Under the pieces are notes generated by a model. The model made no database searches and was not told the DNA's origin. It was given only the letters and a program-made list of their open reading frames with translations. Shown piece after piece: positions 3,252-64,000 of a stretch of DNA of 64,000 nucleotides; position 1 is the stretch's first letter; each line of letters opens with the position of its first letter. Made by a program: the position numbers and the translations under genes. Source of the DNA: Hyaloraphidium curvatum SAG 235-1 (taxonomy: Eukaryota; Fungi; Monoblepharomycota); contig JAIVFI010000040.1 in NCBI GenBank assembly GCA_025558095.1, forward strand, positions 412,667-476,666. The letters are read 5' to 3'.

Positions 3252-3869
3252 CGGCGAGGCTATGGGCTGTATTCGGCGCCGGCTTCAGACGGGACCTTGT
3301 AGATCTCTTGGATCTCGCGTTCTCTCCGGATCACCTATAGAACATCTATTGAATCTCCCCGCTCCGACGCAACCGCATAACATCGCATTCCAAGCGGCAG
3401 TCGGGAGGACGCAAACCCGCCCGCCGCCGACCGCCCGAGAGCCACACAGATGACTCGCATTCCGCGCTCTGGTCGCATGCTGCGCCAGATAGCTGTCCGC
3501 GACTCCATGACTCCTGCCTAGCTCAGCGTGATTGGCTGCCAGCTTTAGAGGACGGTGTCCGATTACCATTCCGGGAGGACTGGTCACAAAGAGTAGCGGA
3601 CCCTACGACGCCGCAAGTTTACGCCTTCCGAGGCGGTGGAACGCCGGTTGCTTCAAGCTCCTTCAGAAGTCGCACGAGGAGGAAAGCATTATGCCGACAC
3701 ACCAGGAGTGCCTCGACGCCAAACCTTTTGGGGCGCGGACGGCCTTGACTCATCACCGGCATCGGCCAGTCGGAGGTTCGTTCTAGGCCCGCCGAGTCAG
3801 CCTCGAATTGTGCCGCCGTCCAGAAGAGAAAGAGAAAACGGCCCCTCCATCAGTGCCCTTACTGGAGCT

Positions 3870-5032
3870 ATGCGGCTTCTCCTCGTTTTGACCCTGCTGG
3901 CAGGCTCTGTGGCTCGTGGCCCGCCGGTGGCGTCGGCGCCGACAACGAGGTGGGGGGCGAAGTGCACGCAACGCAGCGAAAGCTGACCGACCTCGGTGCC
4001 CGTGCGCGGTGCGCTCCTCTGTACATCCTCAGCGTGGAGAGCCTGCGTGCCGCCCCCGCGAATCCGGTTGCTCACGCAGGCTCGGCGCCCGGGGCGGGCG
4101 GCCGCTTGCCGAGGCGAGCGGGGGACGATGACTCGGATTCGGCTCGGGGAGCGAGCACTGGTTTCGGCCGAGGCGCGGCGGGCGGCATCGTATTCCGGCG
4201 CTCGTGCGAGGAATGCCAGGGCTACTGCGAGTACGCGTACCCAGGCGCGCCGCCCGACCACGTCGCGTGCACGGACGACGGAGGCAGCATGCATATCCTA
4301 TACGAGCGCTACGGAGGCGTGGGTTTGCCGCTTGCACCGGCCCCGGCAGTTAAGGAGATTCTAACGGTGATGCCAAGGCCGACGTCACAGCCGACCCTTG
4401 CTCCGCTTCGCCTTGCAGAAACGGCGGCACATGCAGTGCTACAGGCGAGGCAACCTTCAATTGCGCGTGCACGGAAAGTTTCACGGGCCCCAGTGGGTGC
4501 GGCTGTCAGAAGCATGGCTCGTTTGCTGATCCCGAGGACCTCAGCGTGCGAGAGCATAGTCAACTTCTGTCTGGTGGGCAAGTGCCAGAACGGAGCGTCA
4601 TGCACCTTCCTCCCGCTCACGTCGCCATATTTCTTCTGGTACGGTGGAGCCCAGGTCCTCTGTGACTTGCACATCTCAGCATGTAGCGTAACTGCACCCT
4701 CCGATCCACGATTCTACGGACGCTCAGCACTTGCTCTCCGGGCTTCAACGTTACGACCTGTCAGAACGCGTACTTCAAATGCTCGGCGAGCGGCTCCGAG
4801 GCGGACCCAGACAAGTGCTACAAATACTTTGTTTGCAGTGGTGCGGGTGGGTCCTTCACCCAAAAGAGCTGCCCCAAGCTGGGCACAGACCAGGTGGGCC
4901 GCCGCGCTCCCACAACGGTGCGGCGTTAATGCTCCCGATCCACTTCGTCAGTACTTTTTTGACCTAGTCACGAGACAGTGCAAAAGCTCCAAGAAGAACC
5001 CAACTGTGTTTCCCGGCTGTTCCTTGACCTAG
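3870..5032 (+). CDS. Secreted protein: signal peptide, 2 EGF-like domains and a C-terminal chitin-binding type-2 (CBM14/peritrophin-A-like) domain; about 5 introns
   Basis: MRLLLVLTLLAGSVA signal; exons 4391-4492, 4545-4638, 4728-4893, 4952-5032 splice in frame to DPCSASPCRNGGTCSATGEATFNCACTESFTGPTCE / FCLVGKCQNGASC...YFFCTCSPGFNVTTCQ / FKCSASGSEADPDKCYKYFVC...SCP...YFFDLVTRQC...C. Confidence 0.8.
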
Positions 5033-5339
5033 GCCCCACTGCGGATTGCTGTAAAGAAACTACCTTCGTCCGCTTCGTCTCGAAAACCAGGTTGGGGATA
5101 AGGACCATCTCATAGAACCTAGATCGAGCTATTGTGAGGCAGAGCTTTGACTAAATGTCAGTGTGTTTGTGGCGTTTGCGGAGCAACATCTTGCCAATGC
5201 AATGTGCGCCCCGTGGCGGCACGGATGCGCCGCGGCTTCTGACGCCATCAGACCATGATGTAGATGATGCGTTTCGGTCCCGTGCTGCCCTGAAGGACAT
5301 GAAACCCTGGAAAATTCCGATCTTGTAGACGATCTTGCG

Positions 5340-5407
5340 AAGCCGAGTTCATGGCGCCGATATCGCGGATGCGGGGATGGAGGTCAAGGCCTAACAGCGG
5401 AGGCAAT
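5340..5407 (+). repeat. Degenerate direct copy of the 3' end of the SDR gene (about 3198-3263)
   Basis: gagttcatggc..gatatcgcggatgcggggatggaggtcaaggcctaac matches gagttcatggccgagattgcggcggcggggatggaggtcaaagtctgac. Confidence 0.8.
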
Positions 5408-5614
5408 AGAACGATATCGATCAATTATAATCCCGATTGATTAGTGCATGAGGGATGGCGATGTCCAGGCTCTCGGTGACTCGATGAGGAGGGTGACGTG
5501 GCATCCCTACTCAACCGCGACTCAGCAAACAACCCTGTTTCGCCCACGGCCGCCGTCGCAAACCTCTTCCACGACTCTTTCACGTCACCCGCTACCCGCG
5601 TAGAACCAAGCACA

Positions 5615-6496
5615 ATGTCGGCTCGCCGCACCGACCCCCTCGAAAGCACCACCTCGTCGTCCGGCATCACCGGCGTCCCCACCAGCGGTGCCGGCGTCAC
5701 CTCTTCTTCCATGCCCGGTGCGAGCCTCTGCTCTCCCGCGCTCAGCCTGTCGCTTACCTTTCGGAGCAGCGGCGGGCACCGACAGCCCCATCCGCATGAT
5801 GGAGAGCACCTCCGGCCACCCGACCACCGAGCACGGCATGCCCGGGGTGTCTTCGGGCGCCACGGGCGGGTACGGCAGCATTGCTGGCACCGGGTACTCC
5901 AGTACCGCCGGCACGACCGACTACGGCACTACCGGGGCCGGCACGGGCCTCGCCGGGGACACCAGCCGCGGCTTCTCCGAGAGCGGCGTGGGCTCCGTCC
6001 CCGGATCGACCGGATACGGCTCGCACGGGATCACCGCCGCCGGGGTCACCGGCACGGGCACGGACGCGTACGGCCAGCCGACACCCGTGGCGCACGAGGC
6101 GGCCAAGCCTTCCAAGGTCGGCGGGGCGATGGACAAGATGATGGGGTCGGTCAAGGTGGGGCGTGGCCTGCCCCATGGGCGGAAAACGGCTACTGATGCC
6201 TGTTTGTCTGCAACAGGAAGGGCTCGGGAGTATGACCGGCTCGCACGGCATGCAGGCCGCCGGGCACGAGCAGAAGCTCGAGGGGCAGGCCAGGATCGAC
6301 GCCGCCAAGGTACAGTCCCCTCCTTCCGTCCCCTCCAGCGAGCTGCGCTGACCCCAGATTTCCATAGGCGGAGAAGGAGATCAAGGGCACCCAGAAGGTC
6401 GCCGAGGGCGACATGAAGCAGCACTACGGCACCATGGGCCAGGGGGTCACGGGCACCGCCGAGGAGGCCGTGGGGCACACGCGGAGGATGCACTGA
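5615..6496 (+). CDS. CsbD/LEA-like hydrophilic stress protein with Gly/Thr-rich N-terminal extension, 3 introns
   Basis: KPSKVGGAMDKMMGSVK|EGLGSMTGSHGMQAAGHEQKLEGQARIDAAK|AEKEIKG; introns 5718-5769, 6156-6216, 6310-6367. Confidence 0.75.
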
Positions 6497-6953
6497 TCAG
6501 GCAGAGGGGAGATCTTGAAGCTGCTTCGTTTCCTTTTCTTCGCGCGATGGCGCTGTACATGTCTTGATGCGTCCTGCTGAATAGCTTACGTCGCTTCCAC
6601 CCCCGTTCTGCCTCCCCCTCGTCCAGCCTGTCCTCATCACACCTCATCGCCAGTTCCTCCAACACTTCCTTACGAGCCTCTTCCTTTGGTTCCCGACTCG
6701 CTGGGACTCCGCTCAGAGGGAAGGCAATTCGGGAGTGCGGTGCAACGGGCCTGTCACATGCTGCGGCTTCGGGCTTCGGTCCTCCGGGCTTCGCTTCCTG
6801 TCCGGATTGGTGGTTCGGGCTTGTGGTTCGGGCTTCGCTCCTCGTCCGCATTGGCGGAAACTGGGGGGCGGCGGTGGCTGTGGGGAGGCTTTCGGGTGCG
6901 GTGTCCCAGCGCGAGGGAGACGCAACGCCACGGGGCTTTCCGCCGCAAGTCGA

Positions 6954-6960
6954 TATATAA
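6954..6960 (+). promoter_or_regulatory. Probable TATA box of the short CsbD-like gene
   Basis: TATATAA about 90 nt upstream of ATG 7046 in otherwise GC-rich DNA. Confidence 0.55.
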
Positions 6961-7045
6961 GCTCGCTCTCCGACCTTCCGGCAGTATCACCACCGCTGCG
7001 CAATCAACCATTCGCACGTCTACGCAGCCGCCATACCGCATCGCC

Positions 7046-7466
7046 ATGTCGTCGCACACCACCACCTCCGGCAAGCCTTCCACGGTCGGTGGGACTGTGG
7101 ACAAGATGGTCGGGTCCGTGAAGGTGGGACATTCCTTGCTGCGCGGGGTGGGAGCGGGGTTCTGACGGCCGCTTTCCGTTCGACGTAGGAGACCGTCGGG
7201 AACGCGACCGGCTCGCAGTCCCTGCAGGCCGAGGGCCAGCTGAAGAAGCTCGAGGGGGAGGCCAGGATCCAAGCCGCCAAGGTGCCGCGCCTCCTTCTCC
7301 CCCGACTCGGGCCGCGCTGACAAACGTTCCCGCGCAGGTCCAGAACGAGATCGAGGGCACCAAGAAGGTCGTCGAGGGCGACCTGAAGCAGCGATTCGGC
7401 ACCGCGGGGCAGGGCATCTCGGGCGCCGCCGAGGAGGCCGCGGGGCACATCCAGAGGGGGCACTGA
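7046..7466 (+). CDS. Short CsbD/LEA-like stress protein, tandem paralogue of 5615-6496, 2 introns
   Basis: KPSTVGGTVDKMVGSVK|ETVGNATGSQSLQAEGQLKKLEGEARIQAAK|VQNEIEG; same two intron positions as the paralogue. Confidence 0.8.
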
Positions 7467-7679
7467 GGCGGGAGCGTGGTCTTCAAGCAGTAGCTCTCCT
7501 TTATCATTAGGCGGTGAAAACGCGCGCATCTTACTACAAGTCGATTAACTTAGCGTCGCGTGGTCCGTTTTTCCTCTGTTGTCCTCCCGGTCCCTCCCTG
7601 GCGCTCCTTCTACCCCGCCCGGTAGCTCCCGCCCCAACGAAACTTGCCCGCATCCGGCACGTGAACACCGTGGCCGCCT

Positions 7680-8759
7680 TCAGAGGGCCACGAAGACCGC
7701 GCCGACGGCCGCCACGGCGCCGATCACGCCCGCCGAAACCCTGCCGGCCGAGGCGGGGCGCGAGGTCGTCGTGGGGGCCGCGGTCGTCGGGGCGGCGCTG
7801 CTGGTGGCAGGAGCAGATGTGGTGACAGTAACAAAGGACGTGCGGGTGGTGGGGGCCACCGTGGCGGTCGCGGTGGCGCTGGTAGCCGGGACGTCGACCT
7901 TGGCGCACTCTGGGGCAAGGAGGAAGGAGCACGAGGTCAGAAAAGGCGAACGGGACCGCGCGTAGGCGGGCACCCACTTCCTTCAGCGCTGAAGGTGCCG
8001 ATGGGGATGACGCTGCAGTTGCCGTTCAGGACGATCTGGATGCCGGGGATGGGCGACGCGCAGGCGGTGTCGGTGAAGGCGTCAATCACGCCGGTGCCAT
8101 TGGCGTTGCAGGTTGCCTTGCCCGAGCCGGGGATGCCGATGGCGCTCAGCGAAGTGCAGGAGCCGGCCCTGACCGCGGTGACGCCGAGGGTCTGGCTCAG
8201 GTCCGTGGTGTTGCAGTTGGTGTTGAGGAAGATGCGGCCCTCGGCAAAGTCGCCGACCGTGCCGGGCGGGTAAACGGGGGCAAAGGTTGTCGAGCACGTG
8301 GTGATGTTGGAGGCGGCGCCGTCGACGTTGCACTTTCCGGTCTGCGCGATGACGATGGGGTCCGTGCACGACGGCACGCCCTGCACGGGCACGACGGTGA
8401 TGACCTGAGCCTGGCCTGCAAGTAAACTGGTCAGAACGTGCTTGAAAACACGATGACCCCGTTACGAGCAGCCTTTCTGGCGCAGGCCGCCCGCCGACGA
8501 ATGGGGGACGGGACGCGGGGACGCGCCACCGCTCATAACGCGCGCGGGCAGGGCCACAACGCGACGCCCCGTTGCGGGCTCAATCTCCGTCCTTTTCTCG
8601 GCAGCCTGCCTCCCAAGACGCGTCGCTTTCGTGCTCACCGCTGCAGTTGGCGTTCGGGAATGTGGCGAACGAGAAGTAGAGGAGGTTCTGCGCGGCAGCC
8701 GGGCGCGCGCACGCGGCGACGACGAGGGCGGCAAGGAGAACGAGCGCGGCACGGGACAT
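7680..8759 (-). CDS. Secreted Cys-rich cell-surface protein, probably GPI-anchored; ectodomain paralogue of the receptor kinase
   Basis: Signal MSRAALVLLAALVVAACARPAAA; introns 8416-8638 and 7910-7977; Cys-rich domain, Thr/Ala stalk, terminal hydrophobic SAGRVSAGVIGAVAAVGAVFVAL* with no cytoplasmic tail. Confidence 0.8.
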
Positions 8760-9066
8760 GGCGCGGGAGGGTTCCAAAGGCGCGTGAAAACGGGGGGACG
8801 AAAAACTGATGGGGACGGTGGAGACGTTGCCGCCGTGCCCAACACGCCGTGTGGCCAGACCACACGAACATTCGACGGGGCGCAGCAGGCTCTTTAAAGC
8901 TCAAGGCGAGAGACAAGAAGAAAAGATTCGTTGACTGCAATCCACAAGTCTTTGCGGGTTGGATGGCCCTCACGCCCGCCGACTCCTTGCCCAGGGACAA
9001 GGCGGATCAAGACGACACACACGACCGCCAACACGACGCCGTTCAACTTGCAGCCACGGCATCCGA

Positions 9067-10209
9067 TCAATCCGCCTCGGGCACCCCGAACCTCTCCACC
9101 AGCTCCGGCCAGAACCGCCTCGCCACGCTCGGGTACTGCCTCGTCCTGTTGAGCATCCACCTCTCCGCGTCCCCCGCGAGGTCCTGCCCCGTCCAGCCCG
9201 GCTCGGCGTCCGTCCGCGCGTTCAGAGCGAGGGGGTTGCGCTCGGCGGGCAGGACGGATTCCGGAAGTGGTTCGACGCGGGTTTCGAAGGATGGAGAAAG
9301 GAAGTAAGGGAGGCTGATGCGTCCGCCGCGGACGAGGAGGGTGTTGACGCGGTGGGTGGTAGCCGGGCAGCGCCCTCGACTAAAATGGTCAAATGGAATT
9401 GCTAGGTTGACGGCGACGGTGCCGGGAATGTGAGGCACGTCCGTCCAGTCCCCGCTCCAGTTCTGCACCTGAAGCCCCGGTCCATCCGAGACGACCAGGG
9501 TGATCCAAGAGGCCGCGTCGCGGTGCGGGCCTAGTCCCTGGACAAAGTCCTCGTCCCCCTGCTCGTCCGCCCCGAGTGCCGGATAATGCGACAGCTTGGC
9601 GAAGAGGAACGGCTCGTTCCGCACAAAGTGTTCGTCCATGTAGACCTCCGGCAGCCCCAGCGTCCGCATCATGAGCGCGTTGACGGCGTGGAACGTCGCC
9701 CTGCAAGCGTCCCAGTACCGCTCCATCGCGGGCCTGAAATCGGGCAGCGCCTTCTCGTCCGGCCACACGTTGGGCCCCTGCAGCACCCTCTTCCACAGCG
9801 GCGCCTCGGGGTCCGTGCACGGCGGCCGGTCGAAGCCGGCGTCGAAGTTCTCGCGCCGGTTGGGCCGCCACATGGTGCGCTCCTCGCCGAGGGGCATCCA
9901 CCCGCGGAAGTGCGGCGAGAGGCGGCAATCCACTTTAGCTTTTTCCTCCTCGGGGAGGGAGAAGAAGAAGCGGGCCTGTTGAATGGCCTCGGCGGCGATT
10001 TCCTCTGTGACGGGCGAGCCGGCGACGAGGAAGAACCCGACGTCGAAGAGGGCTCGGTGCATGGTGCGGAGGAGCTCGGGTTCGCGCGGCGTGCCAAGGA
10101 GGGAGAGGTCGGCGATTGGGATAGCCGGTTCCCCGGGGGCAGGGGCGGAGGGGTGCTTGGAAGGGGCAGTGTCTCCCGCGGCTGCGGGGGCGGCGTCGCC
10201 GTCGGGCAT
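9067..10209 (-). CDS. 2-oxoglutarate/Fe(II) dioxygenase (IPNS/DIOX-like)
   Basis: IPIADLS, VGFFLV, QGPNVWP, HYP, GPHRD (HxD), ATTHRV, RISLPYF. Confidence 0.9.
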   Translation of the reverse strand: MPDGDAAPAAAGDTAPSKHPSAPAPGEPAIPIADLSLLGTPREPELLRTMHRALFDVGFFLVAGSPVTEEIAAEAIQQARFFFSLPEEEKAKVDCRLSPHFRGWMPLGEERTMWRPNRRENFDAGFDRPPCTDPEAPLWKRVLQGPNVWPDEKALPDFRPAMERYWDACRATFHAVNALMMRTLGLPEVYMDEHFVRNEPFLFAKLSHYPALGADEQGDEDFVQGLGPHRDAASWITLVVSDGPGLQVQNWSGDWTDVPHIPGTVAVNLAIPFDHFSRGRCPATTHRVNTLLVRGGRISLPYFLSPSFETRVEPLPESVLPAERNPLALNARTDAEPGWTGQDLAGDAERWMLNRTRQYPSVARRFWPELVERFGVPEAD

Positions 10210-10644
10210 CGTGCGCCTTCGTTCCTCGGAGTACACGACGTCGACTCGGTGCTCGGGAGGAGAGGAGGAAGAAAACGGTGTGCCGATGCTGCCCACCCTG
10301 GGCTCAGGGGATTTGGAGGCGAAGATGGCGCAATGGACGCGGGCCGTGCGTGGTTACGGTTGTTTGCGGCGCCTCACCACCGCCAGCGAAAACGAACTTC
10401 GGCAACTTCGTCAGCATGCCGCGCCCGCGCCCTAGGCCCGGGGCCAACCAGTTCATTCCGCCGCCTTCGGGGGACGACGAAAACGACGATTGATGATGCG
10501 CAGGGATCTGATGCGCACGGAGGGAAAAGACGATTCCTGAAAAGCAAGGAGGCGCGCGACCGAGGGAAAAAGAATGTGTCGCATGTAATGGTGCAGAATA
10601 GTCCGCGAATCTCGAGCCCAGCCCAATCTCAATGCCATGGTGGA

Positions 10645-11284
10645 TCACTCCGCGTCTGCAGCCAGCTCCGATGCCACGTTCGTCCTCAGCTTGATGTCGT
10701 TCCGCGGGTAGGCGACGCAGGCCAGCACGTATCCCTCCCTGATCTGATCCTCGTCCAGGAATCCCTGCCCGCCCTGCTTCACGTCCCCGGGCTTGCTGCC
10801 CCCGACCAGCTTGCACGCTGCTCCGCGCGTCAGCACCGAATGCCGGCCCCGTGGCGCGCGGGGCCCACCGCACTGGAGGCATCCCCCGTTCCGGCACCCG
10901 TCGTCGAACGGCAGGTCGATCCCGGCCTCCTGCGCGGCGTCGAGGATCGAGTGGTGCTCCGAGATGGGGATGGTTTGGGCGATGTCCTTTGGCGGGGAGG
11001 GGATCAGGAGCGGCGGGGGCGAAGATGCGTCCGGGGCACCTCGTCCTGGATCAGGGTCACTGAAAGACACATCGGGCGTTCAGCAATCACGATGGGCGCG
11101 GACGGAGGGGCGTCCCACCGCGGTACACCTTCGGCACCCTCCTCGCCGGCTCCGCGTCCTTCACCGCAGTCTCCGGGCCGACAAGGCCGTACGCCGCCGG
11201 CCCCGAGCCCGTGGCTTCGGTGGGCACGGAATCGGCGGGCAGCGCGGGGCGCTCGCGGAGCGTGCGGACGTCGACTTCCTCCAT
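10645..11284 (-). CDS. Plant/cyanobacterial-type [2Fe-2S] ferredoxin with N-terminal extension; 3 introns including a 20-nt microexon
   Basis: Spliced KVYR|VTLIQDE|DIAQTIPISEHHSILDAAQEAGIDLPFDDGCRNGGCLQC|ACKL...QGFLDEDQIREGYVLACVAYP; CX4CX2C...C. Confidence 0.85.
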
Positions 11285-11388
11285 TGGGGGACCGAGCGGG
11301 GATTCGGGAGGGGTGCGGAGAAAGCGGGGCTGACGTCCCGCGCAAACTTCAACTGTCCCTTCTAGTTCCGCTGCGAGGTTCTCCTCCG

Positions 11389-13694
11389 TCACCCTTCCTT
11401 CATGGCGCTGAGTTCGTTGAAAACGGCGATGAAAGCTGGTCGCATGGAGGGGTCGTGATCCCAGCAACGCTCCATCAAGGACCACAGCCGGTCGTCGGTT
11501 CCTGGCGGCTTCTCGGGCCTTTTCCTGAGGACCGCAACTTGGTACATGAGCTGGTGTGGAGAGACTTAGGGCGGGGCCCAACAGCTCCGGGATGCCGTGC
11601 CACTCACCGCTGGAATGTTGGTCGCGTTCTCAAACGGATACCTTCCCTTGCTGACGACCTCGTACATCAGCATGCCGAACGCATAGACGTCGGCGGGAGC
11701 CCGCAATGGCTGTCCCTCTAGGATCTCGGGCGCGACGAAGCCGGGGGTCCCCGAAATCCCGCCGGGAGCCGTGGTCGCCTTGGAAGCGTGGTGCCGCATC
11801 CGCGATAGTCCGAAGTCCGCAATGACGGCCCTTTCGCCGTCCACGAGGACGTTTGCCGCCTTGATGTCGCCGTGCAGGATGTTCCGGGTGTGCAGGTAGA
11901 CCATGCCCGCCGCGGCGTCGCGGAGATACCGAATCCCCGTTTGCGGATCCCAGTTCTTCGCGGCAATAGCTTTCCGCAGGTTCCCGTCCGGCATGAATTC
12001 CGAGATGAGCATTGGAGGCGACTGGCAGAACGCCATTAGGGGCAATACTGTTCGAGTGCGTGTCAAAAGCGCAAGCAGACAACGCTGGTCATTACGCACC
12101 GTTCCGATGGATGAGACCGTGCCACGTGCGTGCTTCCTTCAAAAACACGGCCCAGCCTTCCGCATCCAAACCGCCCCGGAGCGTCTTGACGGCGACTCTA
12201 GTCGTGCCAAACAGGATCCCTTCGTAGACCGTGCCGAAACCCCTTTCTCCGACAGGCTTCGTCGAGTCCACAACGATCTGGCCGGGCTCGATGAGAAGCT
12301 TGTGAAGCGGATCGGATGTTGCGACGAGGTCCGAGGGCTCTCCCGGGGAGCTAGACGGAGAGATGGCCGCCGCAGCAAGAATGCCCGAACCAGCTCCCAG
12401 TGGGGATTCTGGAGCGTCTGTGACATCAACCGGAAGGACAGCTGGGGATGCTCCGGCGGGAGTGCTGGAAGATTCCGACCCTGGCTCCTTCTTGGGAGGC
12501 AAGGCGACGGCGGTGTTCTGCGTCTCCTTCGAAACAACGGTGTTCTGCGAGAGAAGAAGTTGGCTGCGTTCCGCCATCGTCTGCGAAGGTGCTCACCATG
12601 GCAAGTGTAGGCACATCCGATGATGCGGAGTCCGGAACACTTGCAACAATGGCCATAGCTGGTCTAGCAGTAGCGGTTGATGTGATATCTTTGGCCGTTC
12701 CCTTATCCTGTCCTTGAAACCTAGCAGGCGCCGCAGGTGGTGGGGCGCCTCCTTTCTCAGTCTCCTTAGAAACGGTGGCGGCAGCAGGAGCCTCGGATTT
12801 CCGGCGCCGCGACCAGAGAATGAAACCGAGGATGGCTCCAACCGCCGCGAGGCCTCCGATGACACCGCCAAGTATCGCTCCGATCGGCGCTCCACCTCCG
12901 CCCGTATCGGGGGGCGGCACCACTGTAGGAGTCGCGGTTGTTGAGGTTGTGGTTGTTGTCGCGACCGTCGTCCTCGAGGTTGAAGTCGCCAAGGCTGACG
13001 TCGTGACGGGGTCGCTAACTCTCGCGCAGTCTGTATTGATCCGGTAAGCGGCTCGTCACTGCCCGCAAGCCACTGTGAAAACGCCTACTTCCGATGGCGC
13101 TGAAGCTGCCGACGGGAATGACGCTGCAGTTGCCGTTCAGGACGATCTGGATGCCGGGGATGGGCGACGCGCAGGCGGCGTCAGTGAAGGCGTCGATCAC
13201 ACCGGTGCCGTTGGCGTTGCAGATGGCCTTGCCCGAGCCGGGGATGCCGATGGCGCTCAGCGAAGTGCAGGAGCCGGCCCTGACGGCGGTCACGCCGAGG
13301 GTCTGGCTCAGGTCCGTGGTGTTGCAGTTGGTGTTGAGGAAGATGCGGCCCTCGGCAAAGTCGCCGACCGTGCCGGGCGGGTAAACGGGGGCAAAGGTCG
13401 TCGAGCACGTGGTGATGTTGGAGAATGGGCCGTCGATATTGCACTTTCCGGTCTGGGCGACGACGATAGGGTCCGTGCAAGAGGGAACGTATGGGCACCA
13501 CGGTGATGACCTGCGCCTGACCTTAGGGCGACCAGGCCTTAACCAAAGGCCAGGCCATAGAACAACGAAGGTTTGCCCCACCAGCGCAATTGGGGTCCGC
13601 GAAGGTCGCGAACGAGAAGTAGAGCAGCGTCCCCTGAGCCGCCGCGGGTCGCGTCAAACAGGCGAAGGCCAAAAGAACGATAGCACGCTGCCAT
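11389..13694 (-). CDS. Single-pass receptor-like kinase (Cys-rich ectodomain, Thr stalk, TM, TKL-type kinase); 5' end apparently damaged or remodelled
   Basis: Introns 13031-13088, 12545-12596, 12048-12099, 11551-11607 join the ORFs in frame; TM IGAILGGVIGGLAAVGAILGFILW-SRRRK; GERGFGTVY, VAVK, HGDIKAAN, DFG, GTPGFVAPE, DVYAFG, CWDHDPSMRP; start codon uncertain. Confidence 0.8.
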
Positions 13695-13920
13695 AGCGAG
13701 GAAGCATCGTCCCGAGACTGCTGCCGGCGAGGTCTTGGCGAGGTGGGGACCCTGCCACCTCCCGAAAGTGCCGGCGGGGAGACGGGAATCCTGCGCCGTG
13801 GAGAGGTGGGGCAGCGCGGCGGAGGCGCGGTCGAGGGTTGTCGCATTCCTCGGAGTGAGATTCGACCGGCGTTTTGGACAGTGGGCGCCGTCGGTGTCTG
13901 AAGGCGAGAGAGACGGAGGC

Positions 13921-63838: not shown

Positions 63839-64000
63839 TAGGTTAGGTTAGGTTAGGTTAGGTTAGGTTAGGTTAGGTTAGGTTAGGTTAGGTTAGGTTA
63901 GGTTAGGTTAGGTTAGGTAGGTTAGGTTAGGTTAGGTTAGGTTAGGTTAGGTTAGGTTAGGTTAGGTTAGGTTAGGGTTAGGTTAGGTTAGGTTAGGTTA
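63839..64000 (+). repeat. Telomeric repeat array (TTAGG)n
   Basis: About 32 units to the end of the window, G-rich strand pointing outward; one TAGG and one TTAGGG variant. Confidence 0.95.

Follow-up and report, generated by a model that had tools for sequence, protein, structure and literature searches.

The plant LysM receptor kinases CERK1 and LYK5 work with the glycosylphosphatidylinositol (GPI)-anchored LysM proteins CEBiP/LYM, and many plant pattern-recognition kinases are of the non-RD type. In humans, FCGR3A and FCGR3B, and likewise the TRAIL receptors and their GPI-linked decoy DcR1, are neighbouring paralogues with near-identical ligand-binding domains, one being a transmembrane signalling protein and one GPI-anchored; the GPI form of FCGR3B arose by small changes at the transmembrane (TM) segment. 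The animal paired receptors Siglec-5/14 and Siglec-11/16 are homogenised by gene conversion. To our knowledge, model fungi have no single-pass receptor kinases. Here we describe two neighbouring genes of the fungus Hyaloraphidium curvatum, a short GPI-type gene and a longer receptor-kinase gene, that lie in the terminal 64 kb of the 476,666-bp contig JAIVFI010000040.1 (C40) of a 31.9-Mb, 55-contig assembly; this whole stretch of 64,000 nucleotides is called the window, and both genes are ~50-56 kb from the chromosome end. The shared ectodomain, its presence in two formats and the conversion of its exon are real, and the assembled sequence does not contain an intact receptor kinase.

The pair resembles CERK1/LYK5 with CEBiP/LYM in that one ectodomain type occurs both in a single-pass kinase of the tyrosine kinase-like (TKL) group and in a kinase-less GPI-type protein. 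It differs in that the ectodomain is not LysM and the kinase sits on a Hyaloraphidium chassis nearest to Agaricomycete TKL-like proteins, not in the plant RLK/Pelle clade. The pair also resembles FCGR3A/FCGR3B and the TRAIL receptors with DcR1 as neighbouring paralogues, one transmembrane and one of GPI type; in H. curvatum, the tail of the GPI-type protein aligns with the TM of its partner, and its stop codon stands where the kinase gene has Trp. Those animal receptors have no intrinsic kinase and are of Ig or TNFR fold, whereas the H. curvatum partner would itself be a kinase, and its gene is known from an assembled sequence with a frame break. The likeness to Siglec-5/14 and Siglec-11/16 is conversion confined to the ligand-binding exon of neighbours (putatively ligand-binding here); fold and signalling differ, and on the H. 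curvatum side the comparison draws on gene sequence.

Among fungi, an 18-species survey counted 54 transmembrane kinases in total (PMC10463195), and receptor-like kinases with leucine-rich repeats (LRR-RLKs) are on record from chytrids as well as zygomycetes (PMC13618815). A first-pass annotation of this DNA had described single-pass receptor kinases working with GPI-anchored partners as foreign to yeast and model-mould signalling; single-pass receptor kinases as such have precedents in early-diverging fungi, given the reported chytrid LRR-RLKs (PMC13618815). The chytrid and zygomycete proteins and the one described here are alike as single-pass kinase receptors of early-diverging fungi that are absent from Dikarya models; theirs carry LRRs, whereas the H. 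curvatum ectodomain is not an LRR domain. No GPI-anchored counterpart to them was described in the literature reached by our search.

An ectodomain exon shared by two gene formats

The short gene (7680-8759, minus strand) is intact. Both of its introns are phase 1, and its three exons splice to a 262-aa product equal to the public H. curvatum protein KAI9003501.1 (P0001), so the earlier assignment of the DNA to a fungus, here a monoblepharid, was right. In order, the protein has a signal peptide, an ectodomain with 10 Cys and several N-x-S/T sequons, a stalk rich in Thr and Ala, and a hydrophobic tail at the C-terminus. By rule-based reading the N-terminus has the layout of a signal peptide, with MSR, a hydrophobic core AALVLLAALVVAAC (best 10-residue Kyte-Doolittle mean 3.3) and AAA before a cleavage at Q. 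The C-terminus, ..TSRPA-S-A-G-RVSAG-VIGAVAAVGAVFVAL-stop, likewise has a GPI-attachment layout by rule-based check: small residues at omega and omega+2, a short polar spacer, and 15 hydrophobic residues at the protein end with a mean hydropathy of 2.7. The same C-terminal layout is present in a paralogue on contig C38 and in a further relative (P0004). As had been noticed at first pass, the gene ends in this hydrophobic tail and has no kinase: nothing follows the 15 residues, and a search of window positions 4500-7700 for a kinase remnant returned only matches with E > 0.01. GPI anchoring is probable from these features, and the gene most likely encodes a secreted, N-glycosylated, disulfide-rich beta-domain that is carried on a Thr-rich stalk and tethered by GPI.

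The second gene lies on the same strand about 5 kb away and has the same Cys-rich ectodomain, in agreement with the first-pass annotation. Its exons 2-6 (13521-11389) encode, in clean reading order, ectodomain, stalk, TM helix, juxtamembrane segment and non-RD TKL kinase. One reading frame runs through the ectodomain, a single TM with a positive-inside flank and the cytoplasmic kinase, which is the arrangement of a receptor kinase. The introns that join these exons are GT-AG, 52-58 nt long and of matching phase; the gene has five introns, one more than had been counted. Pfam searches were made exon by exon, not on the joined kinase protein, and PF07714 (TK/TKL-like) matched in order in exon 4 (E = 1.2e-3), exon 5 (2.8e-30) and exon 6 (3e-6). 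All expected kinase motifs are present and in order (GERGFGTV, VAVK, KEARTW, HGDIKAAN, DFG, APE), as in a protein kinase, and the catalytic HGD in place of HRD makes the kinase non-RD. The nearest solved kinase structures are those of EGFR, CTR1, CERK1, RIPK2 and Eph, which fits a TK/TKL-like kinase; the nearest kinases outside the lineage are Agaricomycete TKL-like proteins at ~38-40% identity. The architecture proposed at first pass, from ectodomain through stalk, TM and juxtamembrane to TKL kinase, therefore stands for exons 2-6 and for every kinase motif, and fails at the 5' end, which is out of frame as assembled.

The two genes are alike in one exon. Across exon 2, 395/429 bases are identical (~92%, or ~94% past an indel; 94% at the protein level), compared with 57% in exon 1, 45% in intron 2 and 47% at the start of exon 3, while intron 1 is unalignable (64 nt in the kinase gene, 224 nt in the twin). 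The neighbouring paralogues thus match in the ectodomain exon alone, the pattern of paired receptors, with 92% identity between flanks that are 45-57% identical or cannot be aligned. The claim that both genes have the same intron positions was borne out for the two introns that flank this exon, both phase 1. Divergence within exon 2 amounts to dN 0.041 and dS 0.164 (dN/dS 0.25; 9 nonsynonymous and 13 synonymous codons). GC content at third codon positions (GC3) is 0.88/0.91/0.88 in exons 1-3 of the twin and 0.75/0.91/0.54/0.66/0.80/0.75 in exons 1-6 of the kinase gene. Exon 2 of the kinase gene is therefore at the twin's level and an outlier among its own exons, which marks it as a compositional import. 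Together, identity and composition point to exon-limited gene conversion, with GC3 suggesting the direction from the GPI gene to the kinase gene. If both proteins are made, the near-identity of the shared exon implies the same ligand for both.

The two formats can also be compared where they part. The twin's tail VSAGVIGAVAAVGAVFVAL aligns with the TM of the kinase gene, GGVIGGLAAVGAILGFILW; the twin's TGA stands at the position of a TGG (Trp) in the kinase gene, and the in-frame sequence after it reads RRPR, against SRRRK in the kinase gene. The GPI form may descend from a truncated receptor, as judged from this short, low-complexity alignment.

The 5' end of the kinase gene

The first-pass annotation had started the kinase gene at the ATG at 13694. 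That codon is +1 off the signal-peptide-like coding (QRAIVLLAFACLTRPAAAQG..LLYFSFATFADPNCAG), and its own frame reads MAACYRSFGLRLFDATRGG.., without a hydrophobic core. The best 10-residue Kyte-Doolittle mean in exon 1 is 1.4 in the ATG 13694 frame, compared with 3.1 in the signal-peptide frame, and GC3 is 0.57 and 0.75, respectively; the GC3 values favour the signal-peptide frame as the one that evolved as coding sequence. The nearest ATG in the signal-peptide frame is at 13846 and would put 51 extra residues ahead of the hydrophobic core.

A second disruption lies at the beginning of the ectodomain exon. The 30 nt ahead of a 5-nt gap encode the twin's QAQVITVVP, with three differences from the twin that are all synonymous in the twin's frame, and beyond the gap the conserved VPSCTDP.. 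falls in a different frame. This break between QAQVITVVP and VPSCTDP is caused by the net 5-nt deletion at ~13490. When the twin's splice pattern is applied to the kinase gene, the ectodomain frame is lost and translation ends at 13181, with a truncated product. As assembled, the kinase gene does not have a signal peptide in frame with its ectodomain.

When starts, donors and acceptors were enumerated, no ordinary GT-AG intron was found that joins the ectodomain in frame to a signal-peptide exon left intact. The sole in-frame GT donor (GTTCGC, 13613) cuts the conserved LLYFSFATF motif and is unlike the other donors of the two genes. Three kinds of rescue were found: GC-AG splicing from donors 13585 or 13576 to acceptor 13521; ATG 13694 with GT 13581 and AG 13516, presumably the model of the first-pass annotation, which has no signal peptide; and an extra intron of 46-58 nt, at the cost of the conserved VPSCTDPIVVAQ segment and of one Cys. 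A word-based, non-exhaustive search among the many H. curvatum kinases listed found no public protein model for the gene, which is suggestive. P0045, from the same contig, was considered as such a model and rejected as a different kinase.

Table 1. Features of the gene pair and an intervening gene in the window. A slash in a donor sequence marks the exon border.
Feature	Position	Strand	Description
GPI-type exon 1	8639..8759	minus	ATG at 8759; predicted signal peptide MSRAALVLLAALVVAACARPAAA cleaved before Q, then LLYFSFATFPNANCS; phase-1 donor G/GTGAGC; residues 1-41 of KAI9003501.1
GPI-type exon 2	7978..8415	minus	Cys-rich ectodomain with 8 Cys and a number of N-x-S/T sequons; phase-1 donor A/GTGGGT; GC3 0.91
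GPI-type exon 3	7680..7909	minus	KC, Thr/Ala-rich stalk, candidate omega S-A-G, spacer RVSAG, tail VIGAVAAVGAVFVAL, TGA 7682-7680
ATG taken as start at first pass	13692..13694	minus	shifted by +1 from the signal-peptide frame (CT ATG G CAG CGT..)
Kinase-gene exon 1, signal-peptide-like	13582..13690	minus	twin-homologous frame QRAIVLLAFACLTRPAAAQGTLLYFSFATFADPNCAG; phase-1 donor G/GTGGGG at 13581; 60/105 bases match twin
Kinase-gene exon 2	13089..13521	minus	bounds from the twin's splice sites; first 30 nt = QAQVITVVP; from 13479 ectodomain CTDPIVVAQTGKC..SFSAIG in another frame
Net 5-nt deletion relative to twin	13490..13491	minus	between GTGCCCAT and ACGTTCCC, in a locally diverged 13/18-nt patch (DNA alignment)
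Kinase-gene exon 3	12597..13030	minus	NC, Thr-rich stalk, TM APIGAILGGVIGGLAAVGAILGFILW, stop-transfer SRRRK, juxtamembrane; phase-0 donor ATG/GTGAGC
Kinase-gene exon 4	12100..12544	minus	juxtamembrane and kinase N-lobe: GERGFGTVY, VAVKTL, KEARTW; PF07714 positions 4-62
Kinase-gene exon 5	11608..12047	minus	kinase core: HGDIKAANVL, DFGLSR, GTPGFVAPE; PF07714 E = 2.8e-30
Kinase-gene exon 6	11389..11550	minus	kinase C-terminus CWDHDPSMRPAF, TGA 11391-11389; PF07714 positions 219-258
2OG-Fe(II) oxygenase	9067-10296	minus	intronless, 409 aa, DIOX_N and 2OG-FeII_Oxy (Pfam)

The ectodomain family and the receptor-kinase repertoire

The first-pass annotation could not assign the ectodomain to a named family, and neither could we by Pfam or by fold. 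No Pfam family matched either ectodomain exon at E <= 0.1, and plant-type ectodomains (LysM, malectin-like, LRR) were rejected on the lack of any such Pfam domain in the two exons. CfaA_B_C (PF11912), proposed by a language-model look-alike search (feature score 0.79), was rejected for want of an hmmscan match. From the ectodomain sequence by itself, AlphaFold reached a pLDDT of 32; given a family alignment of 13 rows, it produced an all-beta domain over mature-ectodomain residues 63-167 (pLDDT ~75-93), the first 62 residues being not resolved. Foldseek against the PDB returned nothing at E <= 0.001, the best VIA-align hit (Z 6.3, to secretin sheets) was below the stated noise level, and ESM Atlas gave unnamed protist clusters at TM <= 0.49. 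Such a missing match leaves the fold unassigned and would not establish a new one.

The family is small. An exhaustive HMMER search of 1.84 billion representative proteins gave 6 ectodomain matches, five of them credible (the twin, its paralogue on C38 and three proteins of sequencing-run assemblies) and the sixth, a bacterial repeat protein, rejected as spurious; a profile search added only a paralogue on contig C13. Within the H. curvatum genome the ectodomain is found at 9 loci. Four are kinase-less with a stalk and hydrophobic tail (C40, C38, C13, C12), and in the other five (two on C48 and one each on C40, C25 and C30) a TM and kinase follow the ectodomain. The idea of an ectodomain used in both kinase and GPI forms thus holds beyond this locus, since both formats recur, and the linkage of the two does not: only the C40 pair is adjacent, and the other kinase-linked copies are without a tail-anchored neighbour in the 10-kb stretches examined. 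The first-pass annotation had raised the recurrence of linked pairs, and none beyond C40 was seen among the 9 loci in these stretches. A tree of ectodomain cores has one strong split (100/99) that groups the kinase copy of C40 with tail-anchored members, apart from the kinase-linked copies of C25 and C30, a topology consistent with conversion or exon capture.

Several family members invite a second look at their models. The public model of the C38 paralogue, KAI9004447.1 (P0002), opens with a non-signal N-terminus, and the sequence just upstream (L003:1130-1270) offers a good signal-peptide exon (MARLSFIVALAGAALALAVSDVSAQ..TDCSGG), which makes mis-annotation of the first exon probable. For the C13 paralogue, the public 280-aa model (P0053) ends without a hydrophobic tail, and another frame (L013:5867-6001) gives ..GGAGKSVVGMGVMAAVAVASLVLML-stop, a GPI-type end, so that the last exon may be mis-called. 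On the 30.6-kb contig C48, positions 3600-8600 hold an inverted receptor-kinase pair with scores identical to those of the C30 copy (C30 51000-53000), and the C48 kinase-exon matches hold an in-frame TGA. By their sequence, the C48 copies may be haplotigs or decaying duplicates.

The kinase half of the long gene belongs to a much larger set. Segments homologous to its TM occur at no fewer than 26 genomic loci, mostly 0.5-1.5 kb upstream of kinase exons. The chassis common to this set is made up of the TM 'PIGAIVGGVVGGLAAV', followed by a basic stop-transfer, by 'SKLL..D.EID' and by a non-RD HGD kinase, and there are at least 159 kinase-exon matches. Ectodomains on other chassis members vary and include RCC1 propellers, Stig1-like Cys repeats and some of no recognised family. 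Examples of the chassis are L016:1039-3396 (C37), L017:2561-6004 (C19), P0008 and P0012. Logan run SRR26194948 also contains relatives of the Cys-rich ectodomain family and of the chassis, among the latter a form with an RCC1 ectodomain; the source of this run is probably a related zoosporic-lineage fungus. A single monoblepharid genome therefore has dozens of receptor-like kinases that combine a common TM-kinase chassis with interchangeable ectodomains.

Explanations for the pair and its chromosomal setting

Paralogy, conversion, the architecture of both genes and the frame break as assembled are established at the level of sequence. The explanation we prefer, with some confidence and no more, is that of duplicated paralogues with a converted exon and a kinase copy damaged at its 5' end. 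The two genes would be locally duplicated members of a small, lineage-restricted fungal surface-protein family near a chromosome end, and the long gene would combine the 5' structure of the short one with the receptor-kinase chassis that is standard in Hyaloraphidium. Exon-limited conversion would have replaced its ectodomain exon with sequence of the GPI gene, which would account for why the ectodomain exon alone is ~92-95% identical. Relative to its own evolved frame, the 5' end of the kinase copy would be damaged twice, by the start codon being out of frame and by the net 5-nt deletion, and the copy may be recently disabled or decaying, or one such allele, or the user of an unusual 5' structure. 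Loss of function of the kinase copy is accordingly a conditional part of this explanation. Local duplication and gene conversion would suffice for the linkage of the pair, and a receptor/co-receptor relation is not needed; a co-receptor or decoy function is speculative.

In favour of a damaged kinase copy, other copies with in-frame stops exist on C48. Several observations pull the other way. No lesion is present from the ectodomain exon to the stop, and the kinase motifs and the four downstream introns are intact. Long neutral decay of the kinase copy fits poorly with the dN/dS of 0.25 in exon 2, although the counts are small. An open frame can be had by canonical GT-AG splicing, either from ATG 13694 or via the extra 46-58-nt intron, and a functional but atypical kinase-gene product is possible on this sequence.

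A rival reading, which we regard as doubtful, takes the locus as a working paired-receptor module. The kinase would be intact in vivo, whether because the assembly is in error, because an alternative 5' exon or intron is used, or because the TM acts as an internal signal, and it would be at the cell surface with the ligand-binding domain of its GPI twin; the twin would be a co-receptor, a ligand-presenting partner or a decoy, and conversion would be favoured for keeping the binding sites matched, as in animal paired receptors. Near-identical ectodomains in otherwise diverged genes, the dN/dS of 0.25, the intact kinase and downstream splice sites, the open-frame rescues with canonical splice sites, the recurrence of kinase-linked and tail-anchored formats in the genome and a non-RD (HGD) kinase, non-RD being a feature of many plant pattern-recognition kinases, all speak for such a module. 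However, no rescue comes without a cost: the signal peptide is lost, a GC-AG donor is required, or the conserved VPSCTDPIVVAQ segment goes together with one Cys. The word-based search found no public model of the kinase gene. The other kinase-linked members have no tail-anchored neighbour within the 10-kb stretches, and two unrelated genes separate the pair. The most far-reaching version, a true fungal paired-receptor system kept matched by conversion and built as receptor plus co-receptor or decoy on a modular chassis of at least 26 genes with swapped ectodomains, is improbable.

It is similarly unlikely that both genes are functional and independent, with the twin as a structural or adhesive surface glycoprotein, the kinase as one of many sensors, and their likeness as a by-product of ectopic recombination near the chromosome end. 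The tail-anchored members on C38, C13 and C12 do stand alone without kinase neighbours, the twin's GC3 of ~0.9 differs from that of the kinase gene and hints at different expression, and the telomere is ~50 kb away. Independence meets the same 5' problem in the kinase gene, however, and leaves the exact stop of identity at the exon borders unexplained except by non-homologous introns. That faulty joining or polishing of repeats in a long-read assembly produced the exon likeness or the frame break is very improbable. Polishing can be led astray by near-identical 430-bp repeats that lie 5 kb apart, and the G that is extra after the ATG sits in a GG pair, but the copies differ at 34 scattered positions in a coding-like pattern, which indicates that they were separately resolved and not collapsed, the 5-nt gap lies in a locally diverged patch atypical of homopolymer error, and the twin model exactly matches a public annotated protein.

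The interest of the pair depends in part on the state of the kinase copy. An ectodomain family in a kinase-linked and a probably GPI-anchored form follows the logic of plant RLKs and receptor-like proteins (RLPs) and of animal paired receptors, independently reached. If the pair is functional, it offers a tractable case for ligand sensing by fungi outside Dikarya and for concerted evolution of a receptor and its decoy. If the kinase copy is dead, the locus would still be a record of receptor assembly and loss via exon-level recombination near chromosome ends.

The two unrelated genes between the pair are the 2OG-Fe(II) oxygenase of Table 1 and a putative ferredoxin-like gene. At the contig end, window positions 63839-64000 hold ~30 copies of TTAGG together with one TTAGGG and one TAGG variant. 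A telomere repeat unit of five bases, (TTAGG)n, is unusual among fungi.

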